Assembly (NCBI GenBank): GCA_033442325.1
Contig: JAWQFM010000007.1
Location: 420,095-439,068 of the forward strand
DNA length: 18,974 nt
Direction: 5' to 3'
Origin: Salpingoeca rosetta
Lineage: Eukaryota > Protista > Choanoflagellata
The notes below the pieces were generated by a model. That model made no database searches. It was not told the origin of the DNA and saw only the letters and a program-made list of their open reading frames with translations. Position 1 is the stretch's first letter. Each line of letters opens with the position of its first letter. A program made the position numbers and the translations under genes. Positions 11,150 to 17,332 of this stretch are shown here, in pieces.

Positions 11150-14100
11150 ATGGCAGAGCTGGTGGAGAGCTGGGGCGTAGAGGACGTGTGCGCTTGGCTT
11201 CGCTCGCTGAAGCTGGACGACCTCTGCCCCATCTTCGAGGAACACGATGTGGACGGCCACTTCCTCGCCTTTATGGACGATGACACGCTTGTGGAGATGG
11301 GCGTCGACTCGAAGCTGAAGCGCGTCAAGATCCTGTCGAAGAAGCGCGGGCTCATCGGCGAGGCTCAGCCCCAAGCCGGTGCGGACCGACCAGGGTCCAC
11401 ATCTTCCACACAGCACCACGAACGACCCCAAGGCAATGATGAGAACGGCAGTTTCGGTGGCATGGAGGGCGAGCGGCCACGAACTGGGAGTGTGGGATCC
11501 GGTGGGCCGCAGCAGCCGACATCGCCTGGACGGCGCTCGTCATCGAGGCGGGGCATGGTCAGAAGCATGGCATCCATGCGGAAGCAGCGCGAGTACCGCA
11601 AGGGGTTCGGCAGCCTGCATGAGGGCGACATCGCCGTGCTGCCCGGCACGCAGCAAGCACCCGTGCAGCAACTGGTTGCAACCGATGCAGACAGCGACTA
11701 CATGGTGGTGAAGGGCACGATGACGCTGGCGGACCGCCGCCCTGCGGACTGGTCGAGCGGTCCACGCACCCACGCCAATACTGACGACTACGATGATGAT
11801 GATGATCATGATGCTGGTGACGAAGGTGGTGTTTACGGCGGCGAGGGGGAGGAGGAAGACATGTATGGGGAGGTTGGCCTGGATGTGACCGCGGACTCCA
11901 TGGCCGTCGCCACCAGCACACGTGTCGATGCATACATGTCCACACGCAAGCAGCTCCTGTCCATGTTTCCCGGCGCATCTCCACAGGACGTGGAGGATGC
12001 CCTTCGTCACAGCAAGGTCGTGGCTGAATGGTGGGGGGGGGTGGAGCGTGTTGAGTACGTGCCTGTTTATGTTGGCGTCTGTGTGTGTGTGTGTGTCTGC
12101 GTGTCTATGTTTGTGTGAGTCTGTGTGACTGTGTGTGAAGTGTGAACGTGTGTGTGTCTATGTGTCTGTGCGTCTATGTGCCTGTGTGCCTCTGTGTGTG
12201 CATCTGTGTGTGCCGCCGTACTTGTGCGCTCTTGTGCCCGCCCCTGCAGCCATCTTGCCTGCGTCCACAACCTCACGTTCACGTTCCAATGCGATGCAGG
12301 CCCAGTGGGAGGATGCTGTTGACCACCTGCTGGCGCTGGGCTGCACGCGACACAGCACCGCATCCAATGATGTCAACGACGTTGTCGAGTCAGCAACCAG
12401 GGCCGTCGAAGGTCAGGCAACACCTGTGTGTGTGTGTGTGTGTGTGTGTGGCTGGCTGGCTGGCTGGCTGGCTGGTTGGCTTTCTGTGCTTGCACCATCT
12501 TCGCCCTTCTGTGTGCTCTGTTTTGCGTGCACTCACCCGTTCGTCTGTATGTTGTGCTCTTGTTCACATTTGTCGACAACTTCAGACGAGAACCCACATC
12601 GCATCGCATCCGTAAGTCCATTTTTGTGATTGTCTGTGCCTGCGTGTGCGTGCGTGTGTGTGTGTGTGTGTGTGTGTGTGTGTGTGTGTGTGTGTGTCCG
12701 TGTGTGTGTGTGTGTGTGTGTGTGTGTGTGTGTGTGTGTGTGTGTGTGTCCGTGTGTGTGTGTGTGTGTGTCCGTGTGTGTGTGTGTGTGTGTGTGTGTG
12801 TGTCCGTGTGTTTGCGTGCATCTGTACAGCAGCCTGTGCTCGTCCAACCACATGTGCAACGTGCTACCCCTACACGTGTGACCATCAGGACTCCGACGCC
12901 GACTGGCTGCATGGTCAGCTCACCCGCGACCAGGCAGACAATCTCCTCGACCTTTACGGTTTGTGTGTGTGTGTGTGTGTGTGTGTGTGTGTGTGTGTGT
13001 GTGTGTGTGTGTGTGTGTGTGTGTGCGCGCGCACGGTTTGTGACGATGTGTGTGTCTGTCTCTATTTTTGTCTGTCTATTGCCTGCCTGCGTGTCTCTCT
13101 GTGTCTGTGTGTGATCATGCGTACCTACGCGTCACATTTGATTTGCTTGTGTACCTCCCTCCTCATCACACACGCTCGCGTCTCAAACTTGCCTCGCCCA
13201 CTCTCCGCGTGTGCTCCAATCTCTCTTTGGCTTTGTTTGCTCTTTACATACTGTCCCTTCCGTCAGGTGGCAAGAACGGGCTGTTTCTCGTTCGTGAGAG
13301 CAGCAGCATCGAAGGCGCTTACGTGCTCTCACTGTCAGTTCATCCAGTGTGCTACCATACCCATGGCTCTGCCTCCCTTTCTGTCAACCTGCGTCGCATT
13401 GCCCTCCGCCCACGTCTGCACATGCGCTCTTTGCCATCACCAACACCAACGCCAACACCACAACCACCCCCCCCCCCACGATTATCATGCCGCCACCAGC
13501 GCGTATGACGGCAAGAAGCTGCACCACATCATCTACGCGGACCCGCCGGATCTGTATCAGATCTTTGACTTTTCCTGTCGCTCCCTCACCGACCTCGTTG
13601 GCCTTCTCAGCGATTACCAGCGCCAGGTCGTGTCCTGCTCCAGTCGTCCTGCACCTGTGCCCGCGTACTCTTCAGACACACACACACACACACACACACA
13701 CACACACACACACACACACACACACACACACACACTTTTCCTCCTTCCTGCAACGCTCCCGTGCCCTTCTCCTTTCCTCAAACAAGAGCTCACCCCCTTT
13801 CCCCCCCTCTCCCCTCATCGCATCACCACATCACCCCATCCTCCCCCTCCCCTCTCCCCAACAGGACGGCTGGTACACGCCGCTGACGCAGCACGTCCCC
13901 CGCAGCGCGTCGTCCCCGGGCGTCACGCAGACGGGCGACTACGCAACCATCGAGGACACCATTGGCCAGATGCGTGCCCTCAATGTTAGCGCACCGCAAC
14001 ACCACATGTCATCGTCATCATCAAGCTCATGGCAGCGGCAGCAATACCGCGAGCAGCAGCAGCAGCAGCGTCAGTCTGCGTTGTCCGCACTGAACTCACC

Positions 14101-17100: not shown

Positions 17101-17332
17101 TGACCCGAGCGTTGCGCTGCAAGACGACATGTGGCAGCAGAGGCACGTGGACAGCATTCTGCCCGATGATCAAGAGGACGCCGGACCGCAGGCGTTCAGC
17201 GATGTGGACGACGATTATGGCGACGGTGACAACTACGGCGCAGAAGACGGGGCGACCTCCCTTGAGGCGCTCCACACAGGGGACGATGACATGGGGTTCA
17301 GCGACACGAGCTTTGATACATCGCGAACATGA
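11150..17332 (+). CDS. Multidomain phosphotyrosine/ubiquitin adaptor, ~1018 aa: SAM - CUE - SH2 - IRS/DOK-type PTB-like - CUEDC1-like (MIU-like) motif - disordered tail. Exons: 11150-12016, 12300-12411, 12586-12611, 12889-12958, 13267-13333, 13500-13626, 13865-14163, 14406-14529, 14759-14816, 15017-15228, 15404-15487, 15685-15725, 15893-15974, 16196-16603, 16853-17332.
   Basis: All 14 introns are GT-AG and phase-consistent (3057 nt CDS). SAM: [58 protein letters not shown]: [23 protein letters not shown]|[11 protein letters not shown], with the MFP and LL motifs. SH2: [15 protein letters not shown]...[19 protein letters not shown]|[14 protein letters not shown]-like: ends in [12 protein letters not shown]|IYRTI. 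CUEDC1-like: [14 protein letters not shown]|[11 protein letters not shown]. Confidence 0.85.
12642..12812. repeat. Intronic (TG)n with periodic CC interruptions
   Basis: Directly visible. Confidence 0.9.
16621..16757. repeat. Intronic minisatellite: ~30-36 nt units of (GGT)n-GATGATGACGGTGCT, about 4 copies
   Basis: Directly visible inside intron 16604-16852. Confidence 0.85.

Follow-up and report, generated by a model that had tools for sequence, protein, structure and literature searches.

The window analysed here is a stretch of 18,974 nucleotides (nt) from the choanoflagellate Salpingoeca rosetta (assembly GCA_033442325.1, contig JAWQFM010000007.1, positions 420,095 to 439,068 of the forward strand), and all positions are counted from its first letter. 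It contains PTSG_03496, a gene of 15 exons whose product of 1018 amino acids (aa) carries a SAM domain, a CUE domain, an SH2 domain, a PTB-like domain and a short helical block of the type found in CUEDC1, in that order (Table 1). We regard this modular architecture as very nearly certain. The same domains in one chain had been proposed in a preliminary description of this DNA, made from the letters alone, and their order is as described there, on a single transcript.

Table 1. Features of PTSG_03496 and its surroundings (window positions; residues are those of the PTSG_03496 protein)
Feature	Position	Strand	Residues (aa)	Basis or remark
Coding sequence of PTSG_03496	11150..17332	+		15 exons, 1018 codons and stop
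Exons 1-5	11150-12016, 12300-12411, 12586-12611, 12889-12958, 13267-13333	+		
Exons 6-10	13500-13626, 13865-14163, 14406-14529, 14759-14816, 15017-15228	+		
Exons 11-15	15404-15487, 15685-15725, 15893-15974, 16196-16603, 16853-17332	+		
SAM domain	11162..11341	+	5-64	Pfam SAM_2 E 3.8e-13, SAM_1 E 8.9e-11
Acidic Tyr-rich linker	11687..11899	+	180-250	D/E-x-Y-M/A-x-hydrophobic motifs, e.g. Y184, Y239
CUE domain	11921..12338	+	258-302	Split by intron 1; MFP at 272-274, di-leucine at 299-300
SH2 domain	12904..13626	+	341-423	Exons 4-6; Pfam SH2 E 2.4e-13
Post-SH2 extension DGWYTPL..HVPRSA, and D-Y-A-S/T-I/V motif (Y449)	13865..13954	+	424-438 (extension)	Conservation
Pro-rich PPLPAR, candidate SH3 ligand	14446..14466	+	537-543	Pattern alone
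PTB-like (PH-superfold) domain	14759..15436	+	565-665	Exons 9-11; seven strands and C-terminal helix in AlphaFold2 model
CUEDC1-type helical block	15440..15893	+	667-696	Crosses introns 11 and 12; extends C-terminal helix of PTB-like domain
Basic amphipathic stretch	15912..16207	+	703-727	K-x-R-x-x-L-x-x-L-A-x-x-F-K; in all family members
Low-complexity, Pro-rich, acidic tail with several tyrosines	16208..17329	+	728-1018	No Pfam match
Microsatellites, introns and 3' flank	12069-12173, 12417-12488, 12630-12817, 12960-13030, 13670-13740			(TG)n/(CA)n
Microsatellites, continued	14170-14260, 14540-14650, 15490-15550, 15995-16045, 17335-17470			(TG)n/(CA)n
Upstream gene	~5669-10364	+		584 aa, no Pfam match on record
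Assembly gaps (N runs)	6363-6462, 10571-10716			
Repeat array	10717-10950			Unit of 8 or 12 bases, translating as WLVG or NQPT
tRNA-Met (CAT) genes	17857-17929, 18073-18145	-		ARAGORN; 144 bases apart

A gene model built by script from these exons has a coding sequence of 3057 nt, every intron of which begins with GT and ends with AG, and its product is identical, residue for residue, to the NCBI hypothetical protein PTSG_03496 (1018 aa, named 'SH2 domain-containing protein' in UniRef). The phase-consistent 15-exon, 1018-aa model put forward in the preliminary description is thereby confirmed in coordinates, exon number and length, together with the RNA evidence below. It is not an unannotated gene: beside the record of PTSG_03496 itself, the Monosiga brevicollis orthologue (XP_001746991) has been listed as an SH2/SAM protein since the genome papers. 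An in-frame TGA (11144-11146) lies three bases 5' of the ATG.

Reads from two stranded RNA-seq runs, together with two sets of Logan contigs, were mapped to positions 11400-17399, with the first 250 nt of exon 1 outside this range. The reads have almost wholly the orientation of plus-strand RNA, and their depth is 10-90 in the exons versus 1-5 in the introns, with the highest values in the tail region. GT..AG joints were recovered for 10 of the 14 introns, and in either run between 5 and 87 reads support each of them. The other four introns (12412-12585, 12959-13266, 14164-14405, and 15488-15684) have no listed read joint because they border TG microsatellites, which are skipped in read mapping. 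They nevertheless fit the model, since the spacing in a spliced contig of 2491 nt matches exactly: 165 nt separate the pieces ending at 12409 and starting at 13500 (2+26+70+67 in the model), and 185 nt lie between 14160 and 15017 (3+124+58). This contig spans exon 1 into exon 14, and a second one joins 16350-16603 to 16853-17324. PTSG_03496 is thus a real, expressed gene, made as one plus-strand transcript.

An artefact that joins two or more genes is extremely improbable. We found no support for it; the sole gap in contig coverage falls at a CAG repeat near 16320-16350 in exon 14, where the read depth is continuous, while stranded reads join exons across the locus, the contigs run from exon 1 to exon 14 and from exon 14 to the 3' end, and orthologous full-length transcripts exist in other species. 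The two separate genes that the preliminary description had allowed for are therefore not what the stranded joints and contigs, which span the locus, reveal.

A (TG)n/(CA)n microsatellite stands beside a splice site in nearly every intron of the gene, and also in its 3' flank. Many reads and contigs have loose ends at 14007-14070 (a CAG/CAA poly-Gln run in exon 7) and 14372-14389 (CA-rich, intron 7), where odd joints with intervening letters and opposite strands occur; most probably they stem from other loci that carry the same simple repeats, rather than from alternative splicing. At position 13105 (intron 4), where reads are few, about half of them show G in place of C, in both orientations; a strain polymorphism or another copy of a repeat may account for this.

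In the expression tables of the S. rosetta genome paper, PTSG_03496 is annotated with SH2 and SAM only, and its reads are about twofold higher in thecate and swimming single cells than in rosette and chain colonies (thecate 334/689/644, swimmer 628, rosette 221/353/403, chain 164; PMC4054682, Additional file 9). The gene appears on one of the sheets of the file of differentially expressed genes, the first of which holds the group elevated in attached and swimming cells relative to colonies (PMC4054682, Additional file 9).

The SAM and SH2 domains are clear from sequence profiles. The SAM domain scores 49.8 and 42.4 bits (PF00536 / PF07647), above the curated cut-off, and its nearest solved relatives are the SAM domains of DGK-delta, liprin-beta, SAMHD1, Shank3, and SARM1. 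The SH2 domain reaches 50.4 bits against a cut-off of 21 (PF00017, aa 341-414), with Syk, ZAP-70 and SHP-2 as the nearest solved domains (E 2e-14 to 1e-11). Both arginines of the phosphotyrosine pocket, R348 (alphaA) and R368 (FLVRES), are present and align to the Syk SH2, and the pocket arginines, including that of FLVRES, are kept in seven of eight family members.

The CUE domain is less conspicuous. The profile hidden Markov models (HMMs) that the preliminary description had named as a check detect the SH2 domain, and they detect CUE in the Codosiga and Choanoeca orthologues (28.5 and 22.2 bits, respectively, above the cut-off); the S. rosetta copy stays below it, and three more orthologues score 20.3, 19.5 and 19.1 bits. 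A family profile of seven CUE sequences, searched against the Protein Data Bank (PDB), finds the CUE domain of CUEDC1 (2dhy, E 2.3e-7), followed by those of Vps9 (E 7.3e-5) and Tollip (E 0.04). The motifs M272-F273-P274 and L299-L300 are kept throughout the family, although two species show small changes in them. In the AlphaFold2 model, the region forms three helices (model residues 3-21, 27-36, and 41-60), with MFP at the end of helix 1 and a predicted local distance difference test (pLDDT) value of 77.5. Among the best 50 Foldseek rows for this model, nearly all are UBA or CUE domains, and no row reaches significance by E-value, which is to be expected of a query of 60 residues. We accept the CUE assignment for the family on these grounds, and the S. 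rosetta copy is a somewhat divergent member.

Between the SH2 domain and the tail, a profile of the PTB-like region and the block that follows found no match among PDB sequences even at E 10, so the fold of aa 565-665 had to come from structure prediction. Pfam PTB/IRS (PF02174) has no match in the S. rosetta protein, and in two relatives the IRS match is weak (13.4 and 17.3 bits, where the cut-off is 22; E 0.08 and 0.005). The AlphaFold2 model of the region (pLDDT 73, from an alignment of only three sequences) was compared with known structures. The all-against-all structural search with VIA-align places the IRS-1 PTB domain first (Z 14.5, root-mean-square deviation 2.0, 100 of 105 residues aligned), then the Dok-5 PTB domain (Z 14.4), followed by FERM F3 lobes and other PTB domains. 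Foldseek likewise returns PTB and FERM-F3 domains (E ~1e-4), and the ESM Atlas rows are clusters of IRS-type PTB domains, with a tensin cluster among the structural neighbours. As modelled, the fold is PTB-like, of the IRS/Dok type, and its candidate ligands are phosphotyrosine, unphosphorylated NPxY peptides and lipids. An NPFF motif just N-terminal to the domain was considered as a self-ligand or a ligand of EH domains and rejected, being present in part of the family only.

The helical block that follows is the best-conserved short block of the family. Its consensus is ED-x-R-x-A-x-L-x-Q-x-EEF-x3-LQ-x-NPEF, in which A, L, Q, and F do not vary among 13 sequences, and it is a helix in the AlphaFold2 model. 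For comparison, we took the human CUEDC1 block from Table 3 of PMC12027864, which prints the human, rat and Tasmanian devil proteins. An HMM of the 13 choanoflagellate blocks scores 35.7 bits over 30 columns against the 36-residue human piece, while the best of 20,000 shuffles scores 17.8; the 'CUEDC1 motif' label of the preliminary description is justified by this difference. The score is partly selected for, as PMC12027864 was found by a text search with six-letter words of the block; the matches reach well past the shared six-residue word on both sides, and CUEDC1 had already been proposed before that search. Both the CUE domain and the block resemble CUEDC1 and stand in the same N-to-C order, so two separate parts of the protein point to CUEDC1. 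The basic stretch at aa 703-727 is alike by eye to CUEDC1, and its 6.3 bits are not significant next to shuffles of up to 18. An ESM Atlas feature search with aa 650-700 gave no usable match, and a word-indexed protein search with the block region of S. kvevrii returned the query itself only, without CUEDC1.

The core of the block, D-x-x-[LI]-A-x-x-L-Q with acidic residues after it, is like an inverted ubiquitin-interacting motif (MIU), when set beside what we take to be the wider MIU consensus, and it may provide a second ubiquitin contact. Mutation of the central Ala and the Leu-Gln pair disables the MIU motifs of RNF168 and ZUFSP (PMC2699339, PMC5824887).

Relatives of PTSG_03496 were sought in two ways. 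A word search gave two full-length relatives, and an exhaustive profile search was run over 1.84 billion representatives with the PTB-like region and the following block as query (E <=0.001). The members come from Barroeca monosierra, Choanoeca flexa, Codosiga hollandica, Monosiga brevicollis (XP_001746991), Salpingoeca infusionum and S. kvevrii, with one environmental sequence and several short marine metagenome fragments in addition. The order SAM, CUE, SH2, PTB-like region, helical block is the same in every full-length member. At this threshold, the exhaustive search found no member outside the named choanoflagellate proteins and the unnamed environmental fragments, once two bacterial matches were set aside as spurious and driven by repeats (a filamentous-haemagglutinin-like protein of 7077 aa and a CBM60 protein), and CUEDC1 was not among its results. 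Judged by these sequences, the architecture is conserved in at least seven choanoflagellate species, and the family is confined to choanoflagellates, as far as searchable.

The segments that join the domains are conserved in part. In the linker between SAM and CUE, Y184-M185 is invariant in the three closest orthologues, and the remaining orthologues have DxYM- or DxYA-like motifs. After the SH2 domain, W426 and P429 of the conserved DGW-x-TPL extension are invariant in eight sequences, and Y449-A450 in the three closest. The acidic Tyr motifs of both segments look like kinase target sites and SH2 ligands, and are candidates for phosphorylation. The PPLPAR motif is common to Barroeca and the environmental sequence P0022 and does not occur in other family members. 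Four members (Monosiga, Choanoeca, S. kvevrii, and the environmental sequence) end in an SH3 domain (Pfam SH3_2), which PTSG_03496 of S. rosetta lacks.

We propose that PTSG_03496 would be a soluble, multivalent scaffold of 1018 aa on a CUEDC1-type frame, consisting of the CUE domain and the helical block. The SH2 domain, with its pocket residues kept, would dock the protein on tyrosine-phosphorylated partners, and the PTB-like domain would contribute a further contact, to a peptide or perhaps to a lipid. The CUE domain, with its MFP and LL motifs, would bind ubiquitin, and the following block might make the second contact suggested above. The SAM domain would self-associate and may multimerise the protein, and the conserved acidic Tyr motifs would be phosphorylation sites. 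The best explanation of this arrangement, and one that we hold to be fairly probable, is that the protein couples phosphotyrosine signalling to ubiquitin-dependent attenuation or sorting of phosphorylated proteins. That it truly binds both phosphotyrosine and ubiquitin seems to us slightly better than an even chance; a specific role in the endocytic sorting of receptor kinases is doubtful. Ubiquitin-dependent damping of phosphotyrosine signalling is the most economical reading because of the reports on animal CUEDC1, which is reported to bind the E3 ligase Smurf2 and to affect the TGF-beta receptor pathway (PMC7655170), and also to bind STAT3 and promote its ubiquitination (PMC13181093).

Several observations weigh against the ubiquitin half of this proposal. 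In the S. rosetta protein, Pfam CUE (PF02845) scores 14.7 bits, below the cut-off of 21.1 (E 0.025, aa 264-302, covering positions 3-41 of the 42 in the profile). In S. infusionum the block is degenerate, and the profile of the block finds nothing meaningful in PDB or Pfam apart from a weak match to CCDC50_N (E 0.08); the MIU-like residues D671..L674-A675..L678-Q679..E682, conserved as they are, form a short pattern only. The fold matches of the CUE model include SMARCAD1 CUE1, which binds KAP1, and a preprint reports CUE domains with partners other than ubiquitin (bioRxiv 10.1101/375832). The CUE-like bundle and the block could thus bind no ubiquitin and be protein-protein or intramolecular elements instead; for instance, the block could bend back into the groove of the PTB-like domain and autoinhibit it as a helix, as in Mint1, whose PTB domain with its autoinhibitory C-terminal helix is among the fold matches of the PTB-like model. 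We consider this unlikely, as the MFP and LL ubiquitin-contact motifs are kept across the family and the nearest solved relatives are ubiquitin-binding CUE domains.

The order of modules also allows for a docking protein that propagates signals in the manner of SLP-76, IRS or Dok. Its SH2 and PTB-like domains would take it to an activated kinase, its Tyr motifs, once phosphorylated, would recruit further SH2 proteins, and the CUE domain would serve self-regulation only, such as monoubiquitination of the protein itself, and not the reading of ubiquitinated cargo. An N-terminal SAM domain, an acidic Tyr-rich linker and a later SH2 domain follow the SLP-76 order, and the conserved D/E-x-Y motifs, the IRS/Dok-type PTB fold, the Pro-rich motifs and the SH3 domain of orthologues are consistent with such a role. 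The CUE domain and the CUEDC1 block are, however, the most family-specific conserved parts outside SH2, which favours a central role linked to ubiquitin. A docking protein of this kind is possible, and less than probable; it is also compatible with the coupling of phosphotyrosine to ubiquitin that we prefer.

A further alternative concerns the direction of the ubiquitin link, and bears on the neighbouring genes. In the public record, PTSG_03496 lies on scaffold GL832962.1 of GCA_000188695.1 between a gene of 584 aa and a B-box/DUF2009 gene. The former, the upstream gene of the window and presumably PTSG_03495, is collinear with the F-box-bearing N-terminal half (515 aa) of P0002, the gene model of Barroeca monosierra, in which this half continues into the SAM-CUE-SH2 protein. 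If this fusion is real, the family would be linked to an SCF ligase. PTSG_03496 might be a ligase adaptor: like CUEDC1, it would recruit or stabilise an E3 and deliver it to phosphotyrosine-marked substrates for ubiquitination, and would not read cargo that carries ubiquitin already. The CUEDC1-type CUE domain and block, the reported binding of CUEDC1 to Smurf2 (PMC7655170), its reported promotion of STAT3 ubiquitination (PMC13181093), and the orthology of the neighbour to the F-box protein fused in Barroeca all favour such an adaptor. On the other hand, the S. rosetta protein sequence has no PPxY motif, and a merged gene model is a simpler explanation of the Barroeca fusion than a true one: four transcriptome-derived orthologues begin at the SAM domain, and the neighbour in Monosiga is a different one, without an F-box. 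We rate the ligase adaptor as improbable.

A bolder version of the coupling that we prefer makes the PTSG_03496 family the choanoflagellate counterpart of CUEDC1 with acquired SH2 and PTB domains. It would bind a phosphorylated receptor and the ubiquitin marks on it at once, through the CUE domain and the MIU-like helix, or would bring a ligase, with the F-box neighbour as partner. This is more speculative still, and rather unlikely; if true, it would be a lineage-specific form of receptor down-regulation, done in animals by Cbl and the ESCRT-0 proteins.

Other features of the neighbourhood are recorded for completeness. A gene for an FCH-SH3 (PACSIN-like) protein lies beside the Monosiga brevicollis orthologue (L002 6492-8380), and the PACSIN-like PTSG_03499 is three gene numbers away in S. 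rosetta; this proximity may be what is left of an earlier microsynteny with an endocytic gene. Two tRNA-Met genes on the minus strand stand just 3' of the PTSG_03496 stop codon. A long repeat array separates PTSG_03496 from the upstream gene, and both Logan contigs over exon 1 end near 10952, at the edge of this array. The window also contains two assembly gaps.

The kind of each module is already known, the gene entered the databases with the genome papers, and SH2 architectures not seen in animals are typical of choanoflagellates. The novelty is that the CUE domain, the IRS-type PTB-like fold and the CUEDC1 block are recognised, which gives the full architecture, and that this architecture is conserved across choanoflagellates. 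In the literature searched, we found no publication that describes the SAM-CUE-SH2-PTB architecture or names PTSG_03496 or the Monosiga orthologue in its text, and neither CUE nor ubiquitin is mentioned by Suga et al. 2014. The tyrosine-kinase toolkits of choanoflagellates are large, and to our knowledge a role has been established for hardly any of their non-animal SH2 proteins. The family physically links phosphotyrosine-reading modules to a predicted ubiquitin-binding frame shared with CUEDC1, and it is conserved and expressed. It offers a genetically tractable entry to how phosphotyrosine signals were switched off before animals, and it may hint at the role of the poorly understood conserved block of CUEDC1. 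Its value lies in a testable hypothesis, not in a new kind of module.

Among known systems, CUEDC1 is the closest. Its CUE domain is the nearest solved relative, and the block ED-x-R-I-A-x-x-L-Q-N-EEF-x3-LQ-x-N-x-D-F is common to both proteins, in the same N-to-C order. Compared with the CUEDC1 family, in which the CUE domain is followed by the ED-x-R-I-A..LQNEEF block, PTSG_03496 agrees in these two elements and departs in having other globular domains. CUEDC1 lacks SAM, SH2 and PTB-like domains and has a linker with PPxY-type motifs (Table 3 of PMC12027864); the SH2 and PTB-like domains of PTSG_03496 sit where this linker is. The tensin C-terminus (SH2 then PTB) and Shc also unite an SH2 domain and a PTB fold in one chain, but they have neither a ubiquitin-binding module nor SAM, their PTB domains are of another subtype, and the likeness in sequence is that of the SH2 family only. 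IRS, Dok and FRS2 share multiple Tyr motifs with PTSG_03496, whose PTB-like domain is closest in fold to those of IRS-1 and Dok; its sequence likeness is below the Pfam cut-off, it has no PH domain or lipid anchor, and the SH2 and CUE domains are added.

SLP-76 has an N-terminal SAM domain, an acidic Tyr-rich region, a Pro-rich region and a later SH2 domain. It differs in the absence of CUE, the PTB-like domain and the CUEDC1 block, and the SH2 domain of PTSG_03496 is closer to those of Syk, ZAP-70 and SHP-2. Cbl combines an SH2-containing tyrosine-kinase-binding (TKB) domain with UBA in one chain, and ACK1/TNK2 an N-terminal SAM domain with UBA. Like PTSG_03496, both thus join the recognition of activated tyrosine kinases to a UBA-type bundle; unlike it, they act as enzymes (Cbl as a RING ligase, ACK1 as a kinase), have UBA instead of CUE, and follow another domain order. 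CUEDC1, too, is reported to act on signalling proteins via ubiquitination (PMC7655170, PMC13181093), and the earlier suggestion that animals split this job among separate proteins was, given these three cases, too strong. Rabex-5 and Vps9 provide the last comparison: the Vps9 CUE domain is the second-best solved match, and the core of the block is like the A-x-x-L-Q of MIU in pattern only, while PTSG_03496 has no Vps9 catalytic domain.

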